Shown here: in pieces, positions 15,345-61,131 of the stretch | Layout: each line of letters opens with the position of its first letter | Numbering within the stretch: the first letter of the stretch is position 1 | Assembly (NCBI GenBank): GCA_000708835.1 | Contig: DF238762.1 | Span: forward strand, 62,001 to 126,000 | Direction of reading: 5' to 3' | From: Klebsormidium nitens | Lineage: Eukaryota; Plantae; Klebsormidiophyceae | Length of the DNA: 64,000 bases | The notes under the pieces: generated by a model | The model's database searches: none | What the model was told of the DNA's origin: nothing | Seen by the model: the letters and a program-made list of their open reading frames with translations, nothing else | Program-made: the position numbers and the translations under genes

Positions 15345-15370
15345 AAAGAAAGGGCTATTAAAATAAGGAT

Positions 15371-15449
15371 CAACTAGTAGGCAACCCTCCCTCTCTGCCT
15401 TATCTTTGAAAAAGAATATAGGGAGAGAAGGAGGGTTGCCTACTAGTTG
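15371..15449. repeat. 20-bp perfect inverted repeat between convergent atpE and trnM
   Basis: CAACTAGTAGGCAACCCTCC (15371-15390) vs GGAGGGTTGCCTACTAGTTG (15430-15449). Confidence 0.9.
15437..15445 (-). tRNA. trnM: tRNA-Met(CAU) elongator, exon 2 (9 nt TAGTAGGCA)
   Basis: Completes the T-stem and pairs with 5' GCCTACT to form the acceptor stem. Confidence 0.88.
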
Positions 15450-16024
15450 AGTAGAGCTCACTGTTTGAACTCTCTCATAGGATCCGCACGTGCACCTCTC
15501 GACGCATGCGGCTCGAGCACCGTTGTAGCAAAGTAAGATTGGTATAATTGATTCTTTCTTCATTTTAACAAGGCGCTTGAGCAATTAAGCTCTCTAAATC
15601 TATTATGAAAGCAATATACTTTCAGTTTGCTTGTTACTCGATCCTTTGCCCAACATGAAAGTATTGGGCTTACCCTGTCTTACTGATAACACACACCTTT
15701 GTTCTGGCTAGACTTTGCTCCGGCAGCCTTGCTTTTATAAAACTTTTCAGCTTTCAAAAACATATGGGGGTCATACATTGATCCAATCCTTGTATCCCAG
15801 ACTGCGGGCTTTAGCCCATTAAGATTGACAGCGATCCCTTTGTTCATTACGAAGCAATGATTGTCTAACCACTCCAAAGATTGCTGGATGGCTTTCATTG
15901 AAAGCCATTTCTTCCCGCTTCATACACGGCTCATTACTGTCTGCCGTCCTAGGAATTTTCCACGCTCTGACCCACAAGCGCCGGCTTTATTGACCGGATT
16001 GCTATCAGTAGTTTCAGGTCGCAC
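15446..16024 (-). other. Group IIA intron in trnM T-stem
   Basis: GTGCG...CTCTACTCAAC, domain V plus 15481-15514, bulged A at -7, EBS1 TTGGAT (plus 15781-15786) pairs with exon end ATCCAA. Confidence 0.9.
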
Positions 16025-16088
16025 TTGGATTTGAACCAATGACTCTTGCCTTATGAGAGCAACACTCTAACCACTGAGTTAAGTAGGC
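16025..16088 (-). tRNA. trnM: tRNA-Met(CAU) elongator, exon 1 (64 nt)
   Basis: GCCTACTTAACTCAGTGGTTAGAG...TTGCT-CTCATAA-GGCAA...GGTTCAAATCCAA. Confidence 0.92.
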
Positions 16089-16220
16089 ATATCCTTATGA
16101 TACTTTATTGAAAAAATAGCTTTAATATAAAAAAAGTAAAATACAAGAATGATTGATTGAAACGTCAAACTGGGGATGGTCTTCTAACCCAAAACTTGCA
16201 ATAGATTCATAAATTGTTCA

Positions 16221-19539: not shown

Positions 19540-19936
19540 CTGCTAACATTAACCGATGAGAGGTCGAAGTTTGTTTCAATAAAAAAGCAAGTTTGACTAT
19601 AAAATATAGGAAGTTCCTTTTTTTATTTATATAGATTTTAGGATAAACTTGAGAGCTTCATTAACTTTTGTTTTATAAAGTATAGGGTTTTTTCTTTTCT
19701 GGGAATTGAATTTTAGTTTTGGAATAAAATTTTTTTAAAGTGTTTAGATTTTTTTTAATAAAAAAGTTTGTTTTCAGGTCTTATTCATTGGAATATTACT
19801 TTCGTTTAGGTTTGTTTCGCTTTTGTAGCAAACAAAGTTTATATTCCTCTTCATTTGGAGCCTTATGAGGTTAATTTCTCACGTTAGGTTCTTAAGCTAC
19901 TTAGGTCACAGTTCAAAAAACGGCCAAGTTTCTATC
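19540..19936 (+). other. 3' half of trans-spliced group II intron of rps12 (start approximate)
   Basis: Domain V GAGCCTTATGAG...CACGTTAGGTTC 19858-19891, domain VI ending TTTCTATC. Confidence 0.85.
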
Positions 19937-22713: not shown

Positions 22714-22797
22714 TGCCGCTGGCCGGACTCGAACCGGCACGGATGTTCTCCTCAGGCCCCTCATGCCTGCGTGTCTACCAAGTTCCACCACAGCGGC
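22714..22797 (-). tRNA. trnL: tRNA-Leu(GAG)
   Basis: CAGGC-ATGAGGG-GCCTG anticodon arm, perfect acceptor and T stems. Confidence 0.85.
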
Positions 22798-34094: not shown

Positions 34095-34575
34095 TTGCGA
34101 TCATGTAAATGATTTGAGGAAGATGGGGTTGTAAGCAAACCTTATGGGCATCTAGCAGATCGTTTGCTGAGAGGCAAGAGGTGACAGCTGCTAGTAAAGC
34201 TTTAATAAACCAAGAGGGTTTTCCTTCTAAGCTTCTATTTGCTTGTGCTTCAAGGCAATCCATGAAATAAGCGTAAGTTTTTTATTAAAAATGTAAATGT
34301 GTTTAGTCTTATTTCTCTCTTTGAAAGAAGACCATCTCGAGCAGCATTACGTGTAATGGGTTAGCTTGCTGAGCTTTTAACCTCTTTCAATCAAAAAAAC
34401 ATGTACCCAAGCCGAGAAGGCTTAGAGGAGGACAGGAACAGGTATGTTTTCTAGTTGGTCCATTCATGCAGATAAAGAAGATAGATCAGTGAATCTGTTG
34501 AAACGAGCCGGATGAAACGCAAAATTCATGTCCGGTTCTTCAAAAAGGAAAATCAAAAGGTTTTCCTATTCCTGC
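34095..34575 (+). other. Group IIB intron in the psbZ 5' UTR
   Basis: 5' TTGCG, domain V 34505-34538, bulged A 34568 at -8, EBS1 TTCCTT (34221-34226) pairs with preceding AAGGAG. Confidence 0.85.
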
Positions 34576-51018: not shown

Positions 51019-51099
51019 TTATCCTTGTCTTTGTTTATGTTTAGGGTTGTTACAGAGAACCATAACTTTTCCCCGTCTTCGAATCAAACGACAACTTTC
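51019..51099 (-). CDS. rpl36: 50S ribosomal protein L36, exon 2
   Basis: [26 protein letters not shown]. Confidence 0.93.
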
Positions 51100-51620
51100 G
51101 CTTGGATAGGACATCTAAGGTTGTCCTTCTTTTTAGAACCGGACATGAGCTTTTTTCTGCTCATCCGGCTCTGGCCTACTTCTCTATTAATGGTTTTAAC
51201 AACCCTTGTTAAGAAAAGGCAGCAAACTTATGAACTTCTTATGAATTAAGTTTACTTCCTTTCATCCAAAAATTGGATGTTAATCAATTTGCCTGGGTCA
51301 GCAATTAGAGAATTTTGGAGCCTAGCTTGTACCGTTCCCTCTTTGTTCTTGTTAAATGCTAAACTAACATGCTCTGTGAATGCTAGTCTTTAGAGTGTTT
51401 AACAGGGAAAAGCATATATCTGTGCATGCAGTTATTTCGATACTTTGTTGCCAGTTAATGATTATCACTCCATTATTCTTTCAGATTTATGACTGGCTTT
51501 TAAGCCTCATTTTCTTCCTAGCTTTCACGAACTGCGTCTCCACAACTCGTCTAGGATAATCGTATCTTTTTAGCATCATTTAGCTTTCAAGATTTTCTCA
51601 CCCATGGTTATAGATCGCAA
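51100..51620 (-). other. Group IIB intron in rpl36 after nt 33
   Basis: TTGCG...CCTATCCAAGC, domain V plus 51136-51171, bulged A at -8, EBS1 ACAGAT (plus 51418-51423) pairs with ATCTGT. Confidence 0.92.
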
Positions 51621-59346: not shown

Positions 59347-59836
59347 GTGCGTCTTTTAACCTATTTGCAGCAAGCTTTCTTCGCTATAGTAAAACTAAAA
59401 AGGTCGCTGAGGAGCGGGCTATTACAGCTAGTGTTACTTTTTTTAATTCTTAAAAGGTAGTAAAAATGAATAAGCAATATGAATCACCTTGTAGATTAGA
59501 TCCCAAATGAAGTGGAAATTTTCAACGAAAGTGCTTGCTAATGCTCAATAGCGAGGTCTTGTGATTTTAGAGGGTGTACAAGCTTGACCTTAGTAAAGAT
59601 AATTGAAAGCTGCAAAATATAGAAAAGTCAATTTCCATAGACAATATTCTCTATGGAGATCAGGAAAAAAGATATAATAAGCAAAGTACTTTGTATTTTT
59701 TCTTATCTAGCATCAATAAGAAGATTTTTGATTAACAGATTATTTGAAATTGAATGCTAGTGAAAGAGCCGTATGAAACTTGTATTCGTTTCACGTCCGG
59801 TTCAAAAGGAGGGAGATAAAAAGATCCTATCTCACC
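59347..59836 (+). other. cemA group IIB intron 2
   Basis: GTGCG...CCTATCTCACC, domain V 59766-59803, bulged A 59829 at -8, EBS1 GCTCAA (59543-59548) pairs with TTGAGT. Confidence 0.9.
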
Positions 59837-60186: not shown

Positions 60187-61131
60187 ATGCTCCATCATAA
60201 AAGTTTTTTGTTCAAAACCTTTCTTTTTTTTATTTCCATTATAAGTTTACTAGGTTTGCCTAGCTTTTCTTATGCATATCCTGTTTTTGCCCAGCAAGGA
60301 TATGAAAATCCTAGAGAGGCGACTGGTCGAATTGTTTGTGCGAACTGTCATTTGGCAAAGAAGCCAGTAGATCTTGAAGTTCCACAATCTGTTCTTCCCA
60401 ATACAGTATTTGAAGCTGTAGTAAAAATTCCTTATGATTTACAAGCTAAGCAAGTGTTAGGCAATGGCAAAAAAGGAGGGTTAAATGTAGGGGCTGTTCT
60501 TGTACTGCCTGAAGGGTTTCAACTCGCACCTCCCGAAAGGCTTTCTCCCGAGCTTAAAGAAAAAGTAGGGAATTTAGCTTTTCAACCTTACAATTCTGAA
60601 CGTAAGAATATACTTGTTGTAGGACCTTTACCAGGAAAAAAATACCAAGAGATCGTATTTCCGATCTTATCTCCTGACCCAACTACCCAAAAAGGTGCAT
60701 ACTTTTTAAAATATAGCTTTCATGTTGGTGCAAATCGAGGACGAGGGCAAATTTATCCGAATGGTAGTAAAAGCAACAATACTGTGTATAGCGCGTCTTC
60801 GACTGGAACAATTACCCAAATTTCTAATCGAGATAAGGGAGGTTTTGAAGTAACAATTGAAGCTGCTGATGGAGCTAAAGTGGTAGATGTAGTGCCGTCT
60901 GGGCCTACATTGATTGTATCGAAAGGCGATACTATTAAAGCTGATCAACCTCTTACAAATAACCCAAATGTTGGAGGTTTTGGACAGGCTGACGCCGAAG
61001 TTGTTTTACAAGATCCTACGAGGCTTACTGGCTTGATTTTATTCTTTGGTTCTGTTGTTATTGCTCAAATTTTCTTGGTTTTGAAGAAAAAGCAATTTGA
61101 AAAAGTTCAGCTTGCTGAAATGAACTTTTAA
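60187..61131 (+). CDS. petA: Apocytochrome f
   Basis: [25 protein letters not shown]. Confidence 0.99.

Follow-up and report, generated by a model that had tools for sequence, protein, structure and literature searches.

Group II introns interrupt several plastid tRNA genes of streptophytes, for which the available parts of Lemieux 2016 and Civan 2014 give the sites trnK(uuu)_37, trnV(uac)_37, trnI(gau)_39, trnA(ugc) and trnG(ucc)_23. Published insertion positions are 23, 37, 39, 43 or just after the anticodon, which bears out the statement in an initial annotation of the present DNA that known plastid tRNA group II introns lie in or near the anticodon arm or in the D arm. Here, we describe a tRNA-Met gene, trnMe(CAU), of the chloroplast DNA of Klebsormidium nitens, which is split by a group II intron in the T-stem. 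It was found in the window, that is, the whole stretch of 64,000 nucleotides of contig DF238762.1 that was analysed. Like the streptophyte plastid tRNA introns, the trnMe intron is a group II intron of a chloroplast tRNA gene and stable within its lineage; those introns are mostly ORF-less and dependent on trans-acting factors, and the trnMe intron is likewise ORF-less. In contrast to these introns, which reside in the D stem or in the stem or loop of the anticodon arm, it is inserted in the 3' strand of the T-stem (64/65). The insertion leaves a 3' exon of 9 nt and interrupts the acceptor/T-arm helix, and the roles of IBS2 and IBS1 fall to the T-loop and the T-stem. As far as sampled, the trnMe intron is confined to Klebsormidium.

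The same host gene carries a group II intron in the plastids of florideophyte red algae, where the insertion lies behind the anticodon and includes a maturase gene (Janouskovec et al. 2013, PMC3607583). The two introns have in common the GTGYG start, domains V and VI, and a gene hidden from annotation; however, the Klebsormidium intron sits at 64/65 and is ORF-less, and was thus gained independently. The initial annotation's view that trnM is normally intronless holds for streptophytes, where the gene is intact in two other plastid contigs (L018 and L138), but not for the florideophytes.

Organellar tRNA group II introns outside the anticodon loop are also represented by the streptophyte mitochondrial trnS-GCUi43g2 (PMC10012718). 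This intron is found at position 43, is mitochondrial and belongs to a family with paralogues, whereas for the trnMe intron no sequence paralogue was detected in about 114 kb of plastome (window plus about 50 kb; blastn, nhmmer and profile HMM), so that recent intragenomic copying is not supported. A location in the T arm, as in trnMe, is known for introns at non-canonical positions of archaeal and red-algal nuclear tRNA genes; these archaeal and algal T-arm introns, however, are short, of the bulge-helix-bulge type and removed by a protein endonuclease and a ligase, while the trnMe intron is a ribozyme-type group II intron.

Our search turned up no publication that places a group II intron in the T arm of a tRNA. 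The trnMe intron is unmentioned in the available parts of Civan 2014, Lemieux 2016, Hori 2014, Janouskovec 2013, the 2023 work of the Knoop group and a 2026 tRNA review (EMBO J); as far as these sources are accessible, it is absent from the 34-site list of Lemieux 2016 and from Table 2 of Civan 2014. Judging from the accessible text, the sites of Lemieux 2016 are numbered alphabetically and sites 22-32 correspond exactly to the eleven sites of land plants running from rpoC1 to ycf3, so that a trnMe intron has no place among them. The 2026 review gives a trnMe group II intron for florideophytes only and describes the K. nitens plastome as devoid of tRNA-Thr and tRNA-Val only. The tRNA gene counts of Civan 2014 were considered as a sign of how trnMe had been annotated, and were set aside because they become ambiguous once trnK is placed in the LSC. 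Most likely, scanners reported the 64-nt body as tRNA-Met and the loss of the 3' strand passed unnoticed. More plastomes of the Klebsormidiophyceae are reportedly described by Glass et al. 2023 (J Phycol).

The trnMe locus lies within the gene order rbcL(-), atpB(+), atpE(+), trnMe(-), rps2(+), atpI(+) and is composed of the following elements:

16097..16102, minus strand: putative promoter, -10-like box TATCAT, 8 nt upstream of tRNA nt 1
16025..16088, minus strand: 5' exon of trnMe(CAU), 64 nt, ending in ...GGTTCAAATCCAA, aligned to nt 1-64 of intact trnM
15446..16024, minus strand: ORF-less group II intron, 579 nt, GTGCG...CTACTCAAC, between tRNA nt 64 and 65
15437..15445, minus strand: 3' exon of trnMe, TAGTAGGCA, 9 nt, the same as nt 65-73 of the intact trnM of L018

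The split, with a 9-nt 3' exon behind a group II intron in the T-stem of tRNA-Met as initially proposed, was confirmed to the base on the minus strand, and the exon lengths of 64 and 9 nt add up to a tRNA of 73 nt on either side of an intron of 579 nt. Since linear and standard numbering coincide in a 73-nt tRNA, the insertion site is 64/65 in standard numbering. The 5' exon comprises the 5' strand of the acceptor stem, the D arm, the anticodon arm (CAU), the variable loop, the 5' strand of the T-stem and the T-loop, together with four of the five 3' nucleotides of the T-stem. What is left for the 3' exon is U65, which closes the T-stem with A49, the acceptor 3' strand (66-72) and the discriminator A73. 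The intron ends GTGCG...AAC can be read directly at 16024-15446, right after the break in the tRNA.

As had been anticipated for tRNA scanners, Rfam recovers the tRNA in truncated form only, at 16081-16024 (36.9 bits over model positions 8-63 of 71), and ARAGORN calls no tRNA at the genomic locus; it is the intron at 64/65 that makes gene finders miss trnMe. Both Rfam matches at the locus, tRNA and group II domains V-VI, are above their gathering scores. Upon joining of the exons, ARAGORN reports a tRNA-Met(cat) cloverleaf of 73 nt with a 7-bp acceptor stem and a 5-bp T-stem, in agreement with the idea that the 9-nt exon restores both stems. The expected joined-exon sequence is ...AAATCCAA/TAGTAGGCA, and the expected junction in the mature tRNA is ...AAAUCCAA-UAGUAGGCA(CCA). 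In relatives, the -10-like box reads TATAAT or TATGAT, within a conserved block CAATRAAGTATNAT amid flanks of 62% identity; a strict promoter scan made no call at 16097..16102.

Concerning the identity of the gene, the intact 73-nt trnM of L018 and L138 is located just downstream of atpE on the opposite strand and is followed by trnV and ndhC. The Klebsormidium exons tile this gene, with the 5' exon corresponding to nt 1-64 and the 3' exon to nt 65-73; 68 of the 73 nt are identical to L018 trnM, among them all of the last 30, and two of the five differences amount to a compensatory change of the anticodon-stem pair 28:42 from C-G to U-A. Exon tiling, the position downstream of atpE and the compensated pair 28:42 identify the split gene as the orthologue of the streptophyte elongator trnM, with its stems under selection. 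Apart from trnMe, the window contains two CAU tRNAs:

54874-54799: initiator-type CAU tRNA with a 1:72 mismatch and an initiator-type anticodon stem
54310-54235: tRNA of the trnI-CAU type, antisense to the Rfam plastid ycf2 5'UTR family

No second elongator-type CAU tRNA was detected by ARAGORN and Rfam in DF238762.1 35,500-149,775 (window plus L020-L022, L033 and L136), corresponding to the whole LSC and to 22 kb of the inverted repeat, with ndhH as the far limit, and the intact trnM elsewhere that would have spoken against the initial proposal is not found there. The remaining part of the record, 149,776-181,482, comprises about 29 kb of the inverted repeat and the small single-copy region. 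According to Lemieux 2016, trnMe(cau) is present in Klebsormidium, and genes ancestrally upstream of the rDNA operon stay on that side, with the exception of tufA. LSC-origin genes thus keep to one side, so that trnMe should fall within the scanned part, and the split gene is the one candidate there. Since plastids of Klebsormidium are presumed to import tRNA-Thr and tRNA-Val, import of tRNA-Met is conceivable as well. As to other split tRNAs (Thr, Val), no further truncated tRNA match was obtained in the window with Rfam at E<=0.05.

Further RNA genes were recorded in the course of these scans. At 22714-22797 on the minus strand, ARAGORN reports a class II tRNA-Leu(gag) for which there is no Rfam tRNA match even at E<=0.05; this putative tRNA has a good acceptor stem and T arm and an odd anticodon loop. 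Two copies of trnF(gaa) were noted, one in the LSC (158-230 of the window) and one in the inverted repeat (L021:16384-16456), where it lies between ycf4 and the gene for 16S rRNA. Also in the inverted repeat, the 23S gene is followed by one for 5S rRNA (L033:19251-19368, 70.6 bits); 5S rRNA is absent from the Klebsormidium plastome according to Civan et al. 2014, while rrf is retained according to Lemieux et al. 2016.

Contigs of relatives were reached through atpE homologues and represent four Klebsormidium lineages, namely K. nitens-like (L001-L006), K. mucosum-like (L011, L012), L014-L016, and L017. The split position is identical in all four, as judged from 12 loci of separate assemblies (NCBI, ENA, JGI) with 10 distinct sequences. 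Mean pairwise identities across the four lineages are distributed over the locus as follows:

80 alignment columns upstream of trnMe: 61.5%
5' exon: 99.0%, with a single change, G/A at position 26
Intron: 73.7%
3' exon: 100%
80 alignment columns downstream of trnMe: 46.2%

These data bear on the trivial explanation of a chance resemblance or an assembly artefact, in whose favour only ARAGORN's miss of the gene can be cited. The chance of a specified 9-mer directly after domain VI is about 4e-6, and together with its recurrence in 10 distinct sequences from independent assemblies this excludes chance; moreover, the same structure is present at all 12 loci, and the Rfam matches exceed the gathering scores. 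We, therefore, regard this explanation as refuted by the recurrence in independent Klebsormidium assemblies and its residual probability as negligible. A metagenome scan with the 18-nt exon-intron junction produced 101 matches, each of them unrelated (many being the T-arm/acceptor end of an ordinary tRNA), and no Klebsormidium contig.

A block of 38-39 nt (alignment A1, columns 502-540) is missing at 15603/15604 from the intron of K. nitens NIES-2285, whereas every other Klebsormidium lineage has it, as do the RNA contigs of X2 and X5. The gap has the look of a deletion specific to this strain, in a peripheral region of the intron.

The interior of the intron contains the hallmarks of a group II ribozyme, which, together with the exon stretches they contact, are located as follows:

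16020..16024, minus strand: 5' splice-site consensus GUGCG, invariant in 10/10 sequences
16036-16032, minus strand: IBS2, GUUCA, in the T-loop of the 5' exon (tRNA nt 53-57)
16030-16025, minus strand: IBS1, AUCCAA, tRNA nt 59-64, the last six of the 5' exon
15842..15846, minus strand: EBS2, UGAAC, complementary to IBS2 over 5 bp, occurring once in the intron, within an invariant block of 22 nt
15786-15781, minus strand: EBS1, UUGGAU, complementary to IBS1 over 6 bp, occurring once in the intron, in an invariant hairpin loop of domain I
A15787, minus strand: delta, immediately 5' of EBS1, with U+1 of the 3' exon as a possible partner
15481..15514, minus strand: domain V, 34 nt, with AGC triad, GAGA tetraloop and 2-nt bulge; 95.5% identity
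15448..15477, minus strand: domain VI, with the bulged branch-point A 15452 in seventh place counted from the 3' end; terminal ...AAC of the intron at 15446

Domains V-VI match RF00029 at 15516-15446 with 44.2 bits against a gathering score of 40. The EBS and IBS partners are all invariant, so that their pairings rest on complementarity, without covariation; the stem of the EBS1 hairpin, though, exhibits a compensatory change from A-U to G-C (columns 301/319), and pairs with changes on both sides are found in domain VI (columns 678/703, 682/698 and 685/695). For the whole precursor, RNAalifold on the 10 distinct sequences yields 186 consensus pairs, 27 of which show compensatory changes. The intron alone accounts for 162 pairs, with 97.6% of the cells being standard pairs and 27 compensatory pairs, as opposed to 3-7 when the partners are slid by 1-3 columns; none of 500 shuffles matched this compensatory count, which, the sequences being related, does not translate into a probability. 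The z-score of the intron fold is -5.8. There is no ORF of note in the intron, and the Rfam class models D1-D4 do not match it at E<=1. Assignment to subclass IIA, as in the initial annotation, has as its only point the single possible delta-delta' pair (A15787/U+1), which is expected by chance in one of four cases. Taken together, these features describe an ordinary group II intron whose insertion site is of a new kind.

Within domain V, the triad nucleotide G (15512) faces A (15485) and not the usual U; this is invariant in the four Klebsormidium lineages. Given this G-A opposition and the lack of an intron ORF, protein helpers are probably needed; nuclear factors or the plastid-encoded maturase-like orf453 could fill this role.

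Elsewhere in the window, sub-threshold Rfam domain V matches, which we take as further group II introns, are located at 19857-19892, 34503-34575, 51078-51173 and 59764-59835. The first of these is just upstream of the rps12 exon-2 coding sequence and was read as the 3' half of the trans-spliced rps12 intron; the last one falls within the range of the called cemA gene. The trnK(uuu) gene is located just before the window (L136:3681-4345, minus strand; about 60,315-60,979 of DF238762.1). Its 5' exon of 37 nt is followed by AAGTTAAATGGGG, in contrast to the GUGYG start of the trnK intron of L018, and, judged by sequence, the 5' end of the Klebsormidium trnK intron appears to be non-canonical.

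RNA data were available as assembled contigs from X1, X4 and X5 (labelled RNA by guess) and from X2 (a metatranscriptome). The intron region is present in all four runs, and both exon-intron junctions are spanned in X2, X4 and X5, whereas the X1 contig (15525-16071) reaches the 5' exon-intron junction only. In X4, a contig of 641 nt (15438-16078) has a depth of 49, compared to 4.5-5.9 for atpE, and the depth is zero beyond 16086; this pattern fits RNA and not DNA. The X5 contig starts at 15437, which is the 3' end of the tRNA, and in both X4 and X5 the intron-bearing contigs end within one base of the tRNA discriminator, contig ends being weak evidence of RNA ends. Hence, unspliced RNA with roughly tRNA-like ends accumulates. 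All contigs at trnMe are unspliced, and neither joined exons nor a lariat junction were seen; a 73-nt structured tRNA would not be captured by ordinary RNA-seq, and contigs drop rare forms.

The convergent transcripts of atpE and trnMe have an inverted repeat in common:

15370..15450, both transcripts: inverted repeat with 31-nt arms at 15370-15400 and 15420-15450, 94% complementary

On the minus-strand RNA, the hairpin has a predicted stability of -57.6 kcal/mol (z = -11), and its arm on the trnMe strand takes in the final five nucleotides of the intron plus all of the 3' exon. Opposite the exon, the distal arm of L014-16 and L017 has drifted while the 3' exon is unchanged, which implies that the exon is kept for the tRNA and not for the hairpin. 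RNA depth is zero at 15384-15422 (hairpin loop and inner arms) in all four runs, despite abundant flanking transcripts.

The atpE contig of X1 ends at 15364 and continues into a non-templated, purine-rich 22-mer, GAAGAAAAAAAAGAGAAGAGGG. Heteropolymeric tails are added during chloroplast RNA decay, and the 22-mer resembles such tails.

With these data at hand, it can be asked whether the gene functions at all, considering that an intron unable to splice might have killed trnMe and that tRNA-Met might be provided by an intact copy in the remaining inverted repeat or by import from the cytosol. Spliced RNA is missing among the contigs, the underlying RNA-seq being of the ordinary kind that is ill-suited to a 73-nt tRNA; the catalytic triad pair of domain V is a G-A; the plastome is already devoid of the tRNA-Thr and tRNA-Val genes; and about 31 kb of the record extend beyond the scanned range. 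A dead gene is, however, difficult to reconcile with exons conserved at 99-100% between flanks at 46-62%, with 27 compensatory intron pairs and invariant EBS and IBS elements, or with the compensatory change in the anticodon stem relative to the outgroups. Also, drift of the hairpin partner has left the 3' exon untouched, and, going by Lemieux 2016, genes of LSC origin are all in the scanned territory. Loss of function is, thus, improbable, and the split locus very probably serves Klebsormidium chloroplasts as their functioning gene for elongator tRNA-Met.

For a functional trnMe, two orders of splicing and end maturation can be compared. The initial annotation held that the unspliced precursor cannot form an acceptor stem and that end maturation must, as a consequence, come after splicing. 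The break that the intron introduces into the acceptor/T-arm helix, by which RNase P and RNase Z normally recognise a tRNA, speaks for that order. However, the two ends of a group II intron come close to each other upon folding, and an acceptor stem across the intron is for this reason plausible; indeed, the consensus fold obtained with RNAalifold pairs columns 1-7 with 709-715, so that a 7-bp acceptor helix is predicted to close the whole precursor, contrary to the first of the two statements. The second one is at odds with the intron-containing contigs that end at 15438 and 15437 and with the lack of depth in the hairpin loop in any run, and also with the predicted hairpin itself, in which an uncut trailer would tie up the 3' exon as well as the 3' splice site (-57.6 kcal/mol). 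An attached trailer would thus be a competitor of the acceptor stem and of the 3' splice site alike; in combination with the contig ends, these considerations favour 3' cleavage before splicing, the reverse of the initially proposed order. End maturation, at any rate, need not wait for splicing. We consider a real and spliced intron whose removal comes first and whose ends are matured second unlikely, albeit far less so than loss of function of the gene.

The reading we prefer, at a probability of roughly 85%, is that trnMe, in its ancestral position downstream of atpE on the opposite strand, is split at 64/65 by an ORF-less group II intron of 579 nt that is spliced along the following pathway; splicing itself, the order of its steps and the cofactors are what we infer from the structures and contigs described above. 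In a first step, trnMe would be transcribed on its own, nearly without a leader. Secondly, the 3' trailer would be cut at the discriminator base, as otherwise the stable downstream hairpin would sequester the 3' exon. EBS2-IBS2 (5 bp) and EBS1-IBS1 (6 bp) pairing would then bind the T-loop and the 3' strand of the T-stem in the 5' exon, whereby the T arm would unfold. In the fourth step, the bulged A15452 is proposed to attack at the 5' splice site; A64, whose 3'-OH is thereby freed, would then attack the 3' splice site at 15446/15445. Finally, the joined 73-nt RNA would refold into the cloverleaf and gain CCA.

A more far-reaching proposition, which we put forward tentatively and hold at somewhat below even odds, combines several elements. 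According to it, this would be the first T-arm group II intron of any tRNA gene, with EBSs reading the near-universal T-loop; its host would be the sole elongator tRNA-Met gene of the Klebsormidium plastid, counted as an ordinary, intact gene in published annotations; and the 3' end would be cut prior to splicing on an intron-bridged, tRNA-like fold, since the uncut trailer would lock the 3' exon in a hairpin.

The finding corrects the annotation of an essential gene, as surveys give the Klebsormidium trnMe as present without an intron, and similar hidden split genes may account for some of the supposedly missing organellar tRNAs. The insertion sites of group II introns in tRNA genes, so far known from the D and anticodon arms, now include the T-stem, with an exon as short as 9 nt. 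The intron also adds to the signs that group II introns have colonised odd sites of the Klebsormidium plastome. For the biology of Klebsormidium chloroplasts, trnMe provides a test case of whether RNase P and RNase Z can act on an acceptor/T-arm helix that is interrupted by a 579-nt ribozyme, and likewise of how the folding of the tRNA and that of the intron compete for one set of T-loop nucleotides.
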